A DNA stretch of 62,927 bases, filler included, from Ministeria vibrans ATCC 50519 (GCA_943704425.1; 8 parts of 8 records of this genome joined end to end with filler, not necessarily neighbours in it); one strand, 5' to 3'. Shown: positions 34,993 through 39,190, numbered from the whole stretch's first letter. Program-made: numbers and translations. Notes: a model not told the origin generated them from the letters alone.

Positions 34993-35056
<64 letters not shown>

Positions 35057-35195
35057 AAGTGATATATAGATAGAGAAAGAAACAAAGTGATATATGGAGA
35101 GAGAAAAAAAGTGAGATATAGAGAGAGAAACAAAGTGATATAGAAAGAGGTATATAAAAAAGAACAAAACAAAAACAAAACAAAACATCACGCAC

Positions 35196-35789
35196 CTGAG
35201 GATTCTGGGTGGCTTGCAGCTGCTGCGCCGCCTGCTGTGCCTGCGCCTCTTCCTTGCGCAACGCCTCCTGTTCTTCTTGGTGTCTGCGAAACTCAGCCTC
35301 TTGACGCGCCAGCGCATCTTCCTCGTCGCGCTGCTGCTGCTGCTGCGCCTGTTTGACATTGACGACCTTAGCAAGCGACACCGTTTTCTGGTTGGACGCA
35401 AATGCCTGCGGAGTCGCCGTCTGCTTCACAACGGGGGCCGGGGCCGTAGCCATGGCCGCGAAAGGGTTGTAGTCGTCAACCTCGACCACGGCGGTCGTCA
35501 TGGCGGACGGCGTGGCGGCGGTGGCGGACTGGACGGACGGATCGCTGAAAGGATCGGCCGTTGCGGCGTCCTCAGCGAACGGATTCGACCTGCGGAGGGA
35601 CGAGAGCGCGTTGGAGGCACGCGTGTGAGAGCCATCGACAGAAGGGGTGTGTGTGTGTGTGTGTGATGGCGAAGAGGGGAAGGTCCCACAAAAAACGAAT
35701 CATTGCCCGAACGCAACTGTCTTTCTGGATCAGCACGATCCACACTGGTGAAATCAAATGCAGTACATTGGGCCTTACCAGTCAGACAT
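35196..35789 (-). CDS. Secretory carrier membrane protein (SCAMP), N-terminal exons only
   Basis: Spliced MSDW|SNPFAEDAATADPFSDPSVQ, DDYNPF, coiled coil LARQEAEFRRHQEE. Confidence 0.8.
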
Positions 35790-36067
35790 CTGCAATGTGA
35801 ATTAAAAAAATTATTTTGAATTTTCTAACAGATCAAGAAGAACACAAGAAGAATTCATTCTGAATATTGTCGAACGGTGGAGGGGAGAGGCTGTCAGGCT
35901 GATGCCTGATGAGCGTGCCGGCGTGGCGTGACTTTGTAATCTGGCATTTAATAATTTACCATTTGAGAATAAGAGAGCGCACAGTCAATAATGTCAAAGA
36001 GAGAATAATACTTATTAAAAGAGTAATAATTAAAGGTGTATCAGATTCGCAATGATGAAACATTCCT

Positions 36068-37444
36068 TCATCGGCCCCACGCAGATCGACGACGAGCAGG
36101 GGCTCGGCGACGTGTAGGGGCTCGGCGACGCGTAACGGCTCGGCGACGTGTAGTCGGTGCACGGCGTCTAGAAACGACAGGTGGAGCACGACGACGAGCA
36201 ACGACAGGTGGAGCACGACGGCGGGTGTTGCTGCCCCAAGTTCGGCGACGAGCAACGGGTGCACGACGACGAGCAACGGGTGCACGACGACGAGCAACGG
36301 GCGCACGACGACGAGCAACGGGCGCACGACGACGAGCAACGACAGGTGGAGCACGACGGCGGGTGCTGCTGCCCCAAGTTCGGCGACGAGCAACGGGCGC
36401 ACGACGACGAGCAACAGGCGCACGGCGACGAGCAACGGGCGCACGGCGACGAGCAATGGGCGCACGGCGACGAGCAATGGGCGCACGACGACGAGCAACA
36501 GGAATGGGACTGGCGATGGGACTAGGCACGACGGGAGTTGGTGTTGGAGTCGGAAATGGGGCGGAGGAAGGAGGCGCTGGTGTTGGTGCTGGTGTGCTCC
36601 TGCGTCGGTTTGTCGTCGGTGTGGACCAGCTCAAACGACGGCGGCTTGGACCTGTACGTCGTCGAGAAAACGAAACACCCCTAGCAGCAACAACAGCAAC
36701 ACACACAAAAAAAAAAAACAAAACAAAAAAAATCCACTGAGACTCCATTCCAGAAGGGAAACTTGATGTTTCCTTTAATTTCTGTACCTTCGGCGAGAAG
36801 TAAGGACTCGACGACGAGCCTGACCGTCCCTGCGGCGCGTCGTGCTCCAGCCATTGCGCCGGCGGGGCGCACTGGGGGGGGCCAGGGGGTGCTGGCGGGG
36901 CTGGCGGGGCGGGTGGGGCGGCAGTGCGGGGCACACTGCGCACTGTTGCATCTACTTCGGCAGCGCCGTCCACACCGCCCACTGCCGCCAGTCCCGCATG
37001 CTCAGACAAGCCCACAACGCTCTCTCCAGACCGTTCTGTTGCCTACCACCCCAAGTAAAGAAACAGAGAGTGTTTTAATATGGAGTTTTTTTTTTTTTTT
37101 AGAATTGCACAGATGGCGAAAACAAACGATGTGTGCGCTTGTGCGCTCCATTGATCGATCCAACAGATGGAAAACATGGTTTAATGTGCATTGCCGAGCA
37201 GCGAGCAGCGTATAGTGCCTGACGACGAGTTATGGAAAGCTTTGCAAAAAAATAATTAAGAAGAACTGACGAAAGAGAGAGACAGACAGAGCAGAGGAGG
37301 GAAAGGCGCAGTGCACAGAACAGATGTGAGATAGGTGGGGGAGCAAAGCAAGGGGAGTTGCAAAGCGGCGGTTCTTACGTGCGTTAAGGCAGAGGAGGCG
37401 GAGAAGAGAAGAAGGACAAGAGCAATGACAGGGACTTTGGTCAT
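36068..37444 (-). CDS. Unknown secreted Arg/Pro-rich repeat protein with regularly spaced RRR motifs
   Basis: Exon 1 37444-37379 MTKVPVIALVLLLFSASSALTH|gtaag; intron about 36787-36682 joins TSRR|RGVSFSRRR; terminal exon (xARRRAP)n ending SAWGR-stop. Confidence 0.7.
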
Positions 37445-37712
37445 TGTGAGGAAGGGAATATGGGGCTCTGCTGGGGGGGGGTGGGTGGCCACTGAGAGTC
37501 TGAGACGGTGTAGCAGCACACACAAAAGAACGCAAAGCGCAGAAGAGTGTGACGAACGTGATCAGAGAGAGTCAGAGAGATGACTCACTCACTATGATAA
37601 GAAAAGCTGTATGTTATTATTCGTCTCAACTTCCATTATACAATCGCAAATCAAATTTCCTTCTTTATTTTATTAAAGAATAACAAAATTTCACACATTT
37701 TTTTCCACCACC

Positions 37713-38753
37713 ATGTCAGGCAACGGTTTCAAGTACGACCCCACCCTACAGTCCCTCGATGACACCACTCCCGTCGTGATTTGATTCTCTTCGTTCCTGT
37801 TTCAAACTCCCTCTCTCAACCGTCTCCGTCTTTCCCATTTAGCGCTGCCGGATCACCTATGGGACCCTCTGGCGAGTCCAGTGGGATCAGTGGACAAAAC
37901 TTTTCACCGCAAAGGTTCGAATCAGAAATCGTCTGATTTTTTTTTTTTTCTCTTTTGGCTCAAGTGACCTTCTCTCTTGTGACCATCGCTCTGCGGCTCC
38001 TATCGTGCATTTACGGCGAGCATCACGTCGAAAAAGCGGTCGCCGAGCCTCGGGGCGCCCACGAGGGTGTTCTCGGGGCGCATCTCAGCCGATGGCGGTG
38101 GCGTTTGTGGTCGTCAAAAAAAAAAACTTTCCCCCCGCTCGCCTGCCCTCTGCAAGCACCTTCTGCGCTGCTTCTTCGGCTCGGATCCATTGCAGTGGTG
38201 TCTTACCTCACTCTGGCATGTCGACAACACGCCTCTGGCCGTCCTACTGGCTGGTTCGCTCACTTTTGTCGTTGCAATTTTTTTGGACATGTCGTGTACA
38301 CTCTGCTCTGCTGCGCCTGACGCCCATATGCGCCTGCACTCACCGCCGCATTGTCATTGTTGTTGTAGAAACCGTGTTCTTGCCGCCGGGGCTGCCGCCA
38401 TTGGCTTCTTTCACAAGGATGCCAACAAGAACTTCGACTTGCAGCAGCAGCTGGAGCTGGGCAGCACCAAGGAGAAGCTGGAGGCGATGAAGAACCTCAT
38501 TAAGCTTGTCGCGGTGGGCCATGACGTTTCTCACATGTTTCCGCACGTTGTCAAGAACGTCGTCACGACCGCCATCGAGATCAAGAAACTCGTTTACGTT
38601 TACCTTGCACGCTACGCAGAGCAACAGCCCGACCTGGCGCTTCTCTCCATCAACTCATTCCAACGCGATCTCCGTGGCCCAAACCAGGTAAACAAAAACA
38701 TGCGTATTAATACACGTGTACCCTGTGGTGTCATATGAATGCGTGTCTCTATT

Positions 38754-38804
<51 letters not shown>

Positions 38805-39031
38805 CATATTTAATTGTGCATACGTCTTTCATTTTTGACACTTTTTTATTATTATTTCAGCTGATCCGAGCAAGTGCCCTTCGGGTCATGTCCAGCATCC
38901 GCGTGCCCATTATTGTGCCACTGGTCATGCTTGCCGTGCAGCAGGCGGTCGCGGACATGTCCCCTTACGTGCGCAAACACGCTGCACACGCCATTCCCAA
39001 GATCTACTCATTGGATGCAGACCAGAAGGAG
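37713..39031 (+). CDS. AP3B1: AP-3 complex beta subunit, 5' part
   Basis: [87 protein letters not shown]. Confidence 0.92.
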
Positions 39032-39099
39032 GTAGGACCAATCAAAACACACTTACTGAGAGAAACAGATAGAAACGAATTGATAAGGAGAGAAACAAT

Positions 39100-39190
<91 letters not shown>

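Follow-up and report, generated by a model that had tools for sequence, protein, structure and literature searches.

A probable minus-strand gene of Ministeria vibrans encoding regularly spaced arginine triplets, and a secreted polycation as its possible product

Introduction

Protamines are small nuclear proteins without a signal peptide, in which arginine occurs in runs of four to six residues of variable length. In the silaffin precursor Sil1p of the diatom Cylindrotheca fusiformis, a signal peptide about 19 residues long and an acidic region at the N-terminus are combined with a strongly basic, highly repetitive C-terminal half (PMC4557024). Silaffin chemistry involves Lys clusters (KXXK) bearing polyamines and phosphorylated Ser, and the repeats end in RRIL or RRNL, which are removed at RXL (PMC4557024). 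Fungal Kex2-processed repeat proteins (KEPs) and precursors of the alpha-factor type carry a signal peptide and a pro-region, together with clustered, near-identical short repeats between dibasic motifs, with X-Ala or X-Pro following the basic site (PMC6339444). Motifs that bind heparin and other glycosaminoglycans (GAGs) include the Cardin-Weintraub motif XBBBXXBX and the von Willebrand-type motif XBBBXXBBBXXBBXBX (PMC3412806). Here we describe a locus at positions 36068–37444 of a 62,927-nucleotide stretch of DNA from Ministeria vibrans ATCC 50519 (GCA_943704425.1), which very probably encodes a protein built on regularly spaced Arg-Arg-Arg (RRR) triplets.

That stretch, referred to below as the window, consists of parts of eight records of the genome joined end to end with filler, not necessarily neighbours in it. 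The piece analysed here, 34993–39190 of the window, is a eukaryotic contig. Searches and folding were run exon by exon, and exons were joined for counting only. Features of the locus lie on the minus strand unless stated otherwise.

Results and discussion

When the minus-strand exons 37444–37379, 36951–36788 and 36680–36068 are joined, as in an initial annotation of the region, they give an open reading of 843 nucleotides (nt), 280 codons and a stop. On recount this reading contains exactly 26 non-overlapping RRR, four before intron 2 (one of them split by that intron) and 22 in the last exon, precisely the numbers that the initial annotation had given. Arginine is found in exact triplets in 78 of its 81 occurrences in the 280-residue reading, and never as RR or RRRR. 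The two clusters, with RRR every 6–12 residues, were also confirmed: the spacings are, in order, 9, 7, 7, 8, 7 and 12 residues, then 38 across a Pro/Thr linker, then 6–9. In the 232-residue RRR region, which runs from 36873 to the C-terminus, there are 79 Arg and a single Asp but neither Lys nor Glu, and only 14 kinds of residue are used.

Cluster 1 consists of seven units whose spacers (NGWSTT, DGQA, VLTS, GVSFS, TGPS, LSWSTPTTN) are mutually unrelated. It begins in the 3′ part of exon 2 (36788–36873; SAPRRRNGWSTTRRRDGQARRRVLTSRR), which is read in genomic frame 2, carries the Arg codons CGC CGG CGC; CGC CGC AGG; CGT CGT CGA; and CGC CGA AG/G (the slash marking the splice site), and ends CGC CGA AG with the donor GTACAG next. 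The remainder of this non-repetitive cluster starts exon 3 (36599–36680; (R)GVSFSRRRTGPSRRRLSWSTPTTNRRR). It is followed by a linker rich in Pro, Thr, Ser and Ala (36494–36598; STPAPTPAPPSSAPFPTPTPTPVVPSPIASPIPVA), in which Pro codons with all four third bases occur, and then by cluster 2 (36086–36493) with 19 RRR. The units of cluster 2 are APVARRR and APIARRR (21 nt), TWGSSTRRR or TWGSNTRRR and APPVVARRR (27 nt) and, at its end, units of the APTRRR type (18 nt). As a tandem array it comprises 21-nt units at 36246–36341 and 36381–36499, 27-nt units at 36159–36220 and 18-nt units at 36086–36153, and a 138-nt higher-order repeat spans 36186–36477 in two copies about 93–94% identical. The diverse first cluster and the (VARRRAP)n array punctuated by TWGSST or TWGSNT are thus just as they had been described. 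The protein ends in SAWGR followed by a TGA stop (36068–36085), and the AT-rich 3′ flank (35947–36067) contains the poly(A)-signal-like hexamers AATAAG from 36016 and ATTAAA from 35952. AlphaFold2 gave no confident fold for exon 3 alone (mean pLDDT 53.6, pTM 0.19).

The case for a coding sequence is carried by the codons. In cluster 1, where the spacers of the seven units have no DNA similarity, all 21 Arg codons are intact and they are of five kinds (CGC 7, CGT 5, CGA 5, AGG 3 and CGG 1). At least 14 of the 21 have changed from the commonest codon and all of these changes are synonymous (P about 4e-7, assuming that ~35% of single-base changes to these Arg codons are silent). The estimate errs on the cautious side, since most CpG transitions would abolish Arg. 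When the amino acids of the rival frame, in which the literal assembly is read (see below), were held fixed and its synonymous codons permuted, at most five off-frame RRR arose, compared with the seven observed (0 of 20,000 permutations reached seven). Of the 11 sites at which one 138-nt copy departs from the other, eight are silent third positions of the RRR frame, two are Ile/Val and one is Ser/Asn, and the unit lengths of 18, 21, 27 and 138 nt are all multiples of three. The GC content of the RRR frame is ~0.86 at codon positions 1 and 2 and 0.33 at position 3, near that of the flanking non-coding DNA (0.35–0.45), a pattern that fits constraint on positions 1 and 2 only. These codon patterns show selection to be acting on the Arg triplets themselves and not on the intervening sequence. 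The initial annotation had argued for selection at the protein level from the divergence of the spacers, and the synonymous Arg codons, the permutation test and the silent third positions all bear it out. We regard it as highly probable that the RRR frame is genuinely coding on the minus strand and that selection acts on it.

It is conceivable that there is no gene here at all, and that a CpG-rich intergenic minisatellite happens to be open, with the signal peptide and splice sites also arising by chance. The array is indeed stop-free in five of the six frames, it has no relatives and no fold, and many of the look-alikes in databases are translated minisatellites. Such an origin would not explain the purifying selection on Arg in units without DNA similarity, the canonical intron that restores the frame within the RRR series or the periodicity of G at codon position 1 in exon 2 (see below), nor would it give a GC content of ~0.86 at positions 1 and 2 with only position 3 (0.33) close to flanking non-coding DNA. 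We consider it very improbable.

The plus strand also reads RRR, 20 times, in an open reading frame (ORF) at 36036–36740. The third codon positions of the plus and minus frames coincide, so openness and wobble variation alone do not settle the strand. The AGG and AGA codons of exon 3, however, keep RRR on the minus strand only, the plus frame reading RRL or LRR at these places. The AT-rich 107-nt insert at 36681–36787 has GT..AG ends and a T-rich tract on the minus strand only, and taking it out brings the upstream RRR into frame with the others. The plus ORF 36036–36740 has no in-frame ATG ahead of codon 140, whereas the minus strand supplies both an ATG with a signal-peptide-like exon and, at the other end, a stop codon with hexamers like poly(A) signals. 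On the strength of these signals the minus strand, on which the initial annotation had also placed it, is preferred for the gene. A plus-strand gene reading (GARRRAT)n in ORF 36036–36740 has a very slight probability. That ORF is open for 234 codons with its 20 RRR, and variation at third positions is silent there too, but besides its late ATG its RRR are interrupted where the minus strand has AGA or AGG, the V/I change of the minus strand becomes T/M, the AT-rich insert has no plus-strand splice signals at its flanks and the RRR series ends at 36740.

The exon structure was then considered from its 5′ end. Exon 1 (37379–37444; MTKVPVIALVLLLFSASSALTH), an ATG and 22 codons, resembles a signal peptide: it has Lys in the n-region, an 11-residue hydrophobic core (mean Kyte-Doolittle value 3.21 for residues 4–14) and S-S-A ahead of the likely cleavage point. 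The ATG has A at −3 and the donor GTAAGA directly follows the exon. Two acceptors are candidates for the end of intron 1, both in frame with exon 1. The preferred intron of 336 nt (37043–37378; GTAAGA...TAG) has an upstream tract that is 0.67 pyrimidine, whereas the tract upstream of the initial annotation's acceptor (36952 or 36943) is rich in purines, its pyrimidine fraction being 0.38, compared with 0.62–0.79 at four other acceptors in the piece. Within intron 1 there is a possible extra exon of 129 nt (37111–37239), open and in phase with exon 1 and acceptor 37043; it has a strong T-rich acceptor (...TTATTTTTTTGCAAAG/CTT) and a weak donor (GTGCAA), and the following intron would be only 68 nt long.

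Acceptor 37043 opens the 5′ part of exon 2, 161 nt (36882–37042) that read ATERSGESVVGLSEHAGLAAVGGVDGAAEVDATVRSVPRTAAPPAPPAPPAPP in genomic frame 1. This is the stretch that had been read as a Pro-rich spacer, and it has strongly the look of coding sequence, in another frame than that of the earlier reading. Its translation is mildly acidic (six D/E compared with three R) and then enters APP repeats. The frequency of G is 0.58 at codon position 1 and 0.21 and 0.26 in the two remaining phases (P=1.5e-4 by comparison with shuffles), and both other frames contain stops over 37042–36882. A nine-base repeat encodes APP APP APP APP GPP, and the differences between its copies are all silent in frame 1 and non-synonymous in the frame of the initial annotation.

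Exactly at a C8 homopolymer (36874–36881; read as G8 from the plus strand), the signs of coding pass from frame 1 to the RRR frame. In the assembly the two frames are unjoined; one C less or two C more would join them. The flanks of the C8 run were translated separately and no base was altered. The change of frame suggests that the run contains either a homopolymer error of the assembly or a real frameshift, or else that the weak acceptor of the initial annotation is the one in use. If the minus-strand RRR gene is real, as is highly probable, about one half of the weight falls on a single protein comprising signal peptide, pro-region and RRR region, with a miscall or frameshift at C8, about one quarter on use of the weak acceptor and about one sixth on translation that starts internally, at ATG 36951, and yields no signal peptide. 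The secretion proposed in the initial annotation is thus upheld as far as the signal-peptide exon is concerned, which is in frame and has a good donor, but the acceptor proposed with it is poor and the better join needs a one-base change at C8. Secretion is plausible and depends on how the frame at C8 is resolved.

An internal start would give an intracellular Arg-rich protein, a protamine-like or nucleolar nucleic-acid binder. ATG 36951 lies directly after a stop and opens the RRR frame (ORF 36775–36951), the acceptor of the initial annotation is weak, and Arg clusters separated by A, P, V, S and T are the composition of protamines. On the other hand, the coding-like frame-1 stretch 37042–36882 and a signal-peptide exon with a good donor would be left unexplained, a mucin-like Pro/Thr linker would be unusual in a nuclear protein, and at ~258 amino acids the product would be far longer than protamines. 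An intracellular protein of this kind seems improbable.

The assembly may also be literally true. With acceptor 37043, exon 1, exon 2 from 37042 (frame 1) and exon 3 (frame 0) would encode a secreted protein of 159 amino acids ending at TAG 36524–36522; the homogeneous repeats would be a minisatellite in the 3′ untranslated region, and NCG codons would by accident have given the seven upstream RRR off-frame. In favour of this reading, the acceptor is the better one, the frame need not change and is open throughout, and the GC content at third codon positions (GC3), 0.79–0.85, is close to the 0.73 of the neighbouring genes. The high GC3 and the openness, however, follow automatically if the other frame encodes a protein rich in R, P, T, A and S, since third positions of the literal frame are second positions of the RRR frame. 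The seven off-frame RRR are not explained by it (0 of 20,000 synonymous permutations), and neither is the use of AGG where CGN is not used, nor the restriction of variation in a supposedly untranslated array to third positions of the RRR frame and to multiples of three. There is little probability, in our view, that the literal reading is correct. Codon-usage scoring, trained on ~269 neighbouring codons, was dropped as an arbiter between the frames: the score reflects mostly amino-acid composition and is unfit here because of the same coincidence of third and second positions.

Intron 2 (36681–36787; 107 nt, 35% GC) begins GTACAG and passes through a long T-rich and (TG)n tract to CTAG, a style that resembles the adaptin introns of the same contig. 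Its removal shifts the frame by one, and the RRR series then runs on across exons 2 and 3, with four further clusters upstream. One RRR had been thought to be created only by splicing, but the unspliced frame also reads CGC CGA AGG (...TSRRRYRN*) because intron 2 begins with G; splicing restores the frame rather than creating the split RRR. Intron 2 is stop-free in genomic frame 1, so mechanical ORF finding returns an ORF of 315 amino acids at 36068–37015. This was rejected as a gene model, since it treats intron 2 as coding and lacks the four RRR that lie upstream. Its transmembrane-like segment FFVLFFFFVCVAVVAA is the translated T-rich tract of the 35%-GC intron. The 315-amino-acid ORF is an annotation trap of its own, in that translation of the T tract mimics a transmembrane helix (WIFFVLFFFFVCVAVVAA) with Arg next to it.

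Relatives of the protein were sought in several ways. A word-index protein search with exon 3 returned nothing at E<=1e-3, and the ESM Atlas gave no usable match to exon 3 or to the frame-1 stretch of exon 2. HMMER searching of exon 3 against 1.84 billion representatives gave 114 matches, all confined to the periodic part (query ~56–150). They are unrelated period-7 repeats, e.g. (AERRAPS)n, (RRRLPFN)n and (SPIANRQ)n; many are plainly minisatellites in translation, and none of the 114 spans the non-repetitive cluster or pairs a signal peptide with an RRR array. Long (AERRAPS)n arrays occur in three otherwise unrelated database proteins (matches P0005, P0011 and P0021). Several further HMMER matches are plain translations of 21-nt minisatellites, and spurious heptad 'proteins' are common in large collections. 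Pfam searches of every exon and of the rival frames gave sub-threshold noise only, and an Alanine_zipper match on the plus-strand ORF was discarded as a low-complexity artefact. A scan of metagenome contigs with the adaptin exons found 38 distant loci (best 58% identical), none of which has an RRR-rich ORF nearby. A literature search with the repeat string found no match. These word-index, Atlas, HMMER and Pfam results agree with the initial annotation, in which no family had been recognised. The gene has no known relatives and is taken to be lineage-restricted; its general architecture has precedents.

Two fates of the product had been put forward in the initial annotation, a precursor cut by a convertase and an intact polycation, and the sequence leans away from the former and towards the latter, a leaning that rests on the pattern of conservation. 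Our favoured explanation, to which we give a little under an even chance, is that the locus is a real lineage-restricted minus-strand gene of three or four exons whose product would be a secreted, largely intact polycation that binds polyanions. The protein would enter the secretory pathway by means of the exon-1 signal peptide. A short acidic, Ala/Gly/Val-containing pro-region would follow, then APP repeats and then the cationic clusters, split by the Pro/Thr linker, which is probably O-glycosylated; such linkers are common in extracellular, O-glycosylated proteins. Largely intact or only coarsely cut, the chain would be a disordered, multivalent polycation, and its regularly spaced guanidinium clusters might bind an extracellular polyanion and condense it. 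Polysaccharide of the wall or matrix, polyphosphate or silica precursors, nucleic acid and microbial surfaces are examples of such a partner. An intact polycation is favoured because RRR and the ~7-residue spacing are conserved while the spacers are free, and because Lys, Glu and almost all Asp are absent. Cleavage would give no reason for the avoidance of Lys and of acidic residues, but a function that lies in net charge and guanidinium chemistry would lead one to expect it.

Cleavage into a set of short peptides is less likely but is a serious possibility. Kexin-like cuts after RR or RRR, followed by trimming, would release APVA, APIA, TWGSST and APPVVA from a polyprotein resembling fungal KEPs or precursors of the TRH or FMRFamide type. 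Cutting of dibasic sites in disordered secretory proteins is likely, and 26 exposed dibasic sites would transit the Golgi; an acidic pro-region also lies ahead of the repeats. The working features by which KEPs are recognised (a signal peptide, at least three internal repeats, and KR, RR or KK between them; PMC6339444) are matched provided that exon 1 is linked to the RRR frame. The putative peptides, however, are 3–9 uncharged residues, unrelated in cluster 1, with invariant sites between them, whereas peptide precursors show the reverse. There is no Lys, yet KR is the preferred Kex2 site (PMC6339444), and there is no Gly for amidation. The main spacer, AP-VA, consists only of X-Pro and X-Ala dipeptides, the signature of Ste13 trimming (PMC6339444), so little product would be left after trimming.

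Several findings weigh against an intact secreted polycation encoded in the RRR frame. Should the organism have a kexin-type protease, the 26 exposed RR sites would be its natural substrates. None of the searches found a relative, and superficially similar, evidently spurious translations of 21-nt minisatellites are abundant in databases. The GC3 of the RRR frame is 0.33–0.58, compared with 0.73 in the neighbouring genes. Finally, the literal assembly with acceptor 37043 gives a 159-amino-acid product that stops at 36524–36522, just ahead of the array.

As a further and tentative suggestion, the intact polycation may represent a class of secreted proteins not described before, with exact Arg triplets at ~7-residue spacing as the functional unit. 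It would be an arginine-based extracellular counterpart of silaffins or protamines that organises or condenses a polyanion outside the cell (matrix polysaccharide, polyphosphate, silica or DNA) in a protist. If it is expressed as proposed, it would be an unusually clean natural periodic polycation, Arg-only, Lys-free and acid-free, that passes through the secretory pathway, and it would show either how a charge of about +78 can be exported without destruction by convertases or how that destruction is used. The VARRRAP heptad is simple and synthesisable and would lend itself to tests of arginine-specific binding to polyanions and minerals. There is also a caution for annotation in this locus: the literal ORFs (315 amino acids through the intron and 159 amino acids in the wrong frame) mislead, and only tests at the level of codons show the selected frame.

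Neighbouring genes

The RRR gene fills the 2.1 kb between two neighbours that look like ordinary genes of membrane traffic. On one side, an adaptin gene begins on the plus strand (its 5′ end at 37714–39028), with Pfam Adaptin_N matches in the exons 38361–38690 (E 1.6e-23) and 38858–39028 (E 2.6e-15); we take it to encode the beta subunit of AP-3 from the look of its sequence. Its ATG at 37714 (+) is 269 nt from the ATG of the RRR gene at 37444 (−). Given start codons so close together on opposite strands, the two genes probably have a divergent promoter in common. The long adaptin intron 37923–38366, with a GC content of ~0.55, shows that AT-richness is not a constant feature of introns here. 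A (TG)25 run (38753–38802) lies within an adaptin intron.

On the other side is the start of a minus-strand gene (35196–35640) with three NPF/DPF motifs (SNPF, ADPF and YNPF) followed by a Gln/Glu-rich coil, presumably the N-terminal layout of secretory carrier proteins of the SCAMP type. This gene start, which lies below about 35640, had no Pfam match, and the remainder of the gene is lost at the edge of the piece. Rfam gave no match on the piece. Both edges of the contig are (GA)n microsatellites, at which the assembly evidently broke. At these contig ends (34993–35149 and 39067–39190) the (GA)n runs adjoin related 20–24-nt repeats of the AGAGAGAAACAAAGTGATATAT type.

Comparison with known systems

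In overall layout there is a likeness to Sil1p, also of ~270–310 amino acids, though the RRR protein fits that layout only if exon 1 and 37042–36882 join the RRR frame. The chemistry is different. There is no Lys after the signal peptide and none in the 232-residue RRR region, so the Lys clusters of silaffins have no counterpart, and in place of Ser-rich repeats the main unit, APVARRR, has no Ser, the repeats as a whole containing few. RXL, at which silaffin repeats end, follows only two of the 26 clusters (RRRVL and RRRLS), and there is no sequence similarity between the RRR protein and silaffin.

The repeats resemble those of KEPs: there are at least three over at least 15% of the protein, the 22 RRR-ending units of exon 3 making up more than half of it, RR (within RRR) separates them, and X-Ala and X-Pro dipeptides come after the basic site. 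Exon 1 is a typical signal peptide, but its presence on the same chain as the RRR frame takes the weak acceptor or a frame change at C8. KEPs conserve the peptide and are mostly cut at KR, whereas the RRR protein conserves the basic triplet, its 'peptide' being 3–9 neutral residues. The SCAMP-like neighbour, moreover, suggests that the gene is probably not of fungal origin.

Like protamines, the RRR protein has Arg clusters, short spacers of A, P, V, S and T, almost no acidic residues and no fold. It differs in clusters of always exactly three, in the Pro/Thr linker, in a length of 258–280 amino acids or more and in its probable signal peptide, and Pfam gave no match to protamine families at E up to 1.

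With GAG-binding motifs the protein shares BBB clusters, small hydropathic flanks and short repeat intervals. The exact Cardin-Weintraub motifs XBBBXXBX and XBBXBX do not occur, as the next basic residue is at least four positions away (spacers of 3–9 residues, not 2), which leaves position 7 of XBBBXXBX without a basic residue in every case. GAG-binding motifs are single sites in folded proteins, whereas the RRR protein presents a 26-fold array, and by analogy with such sites the binding of polyanions by this array is plausible.

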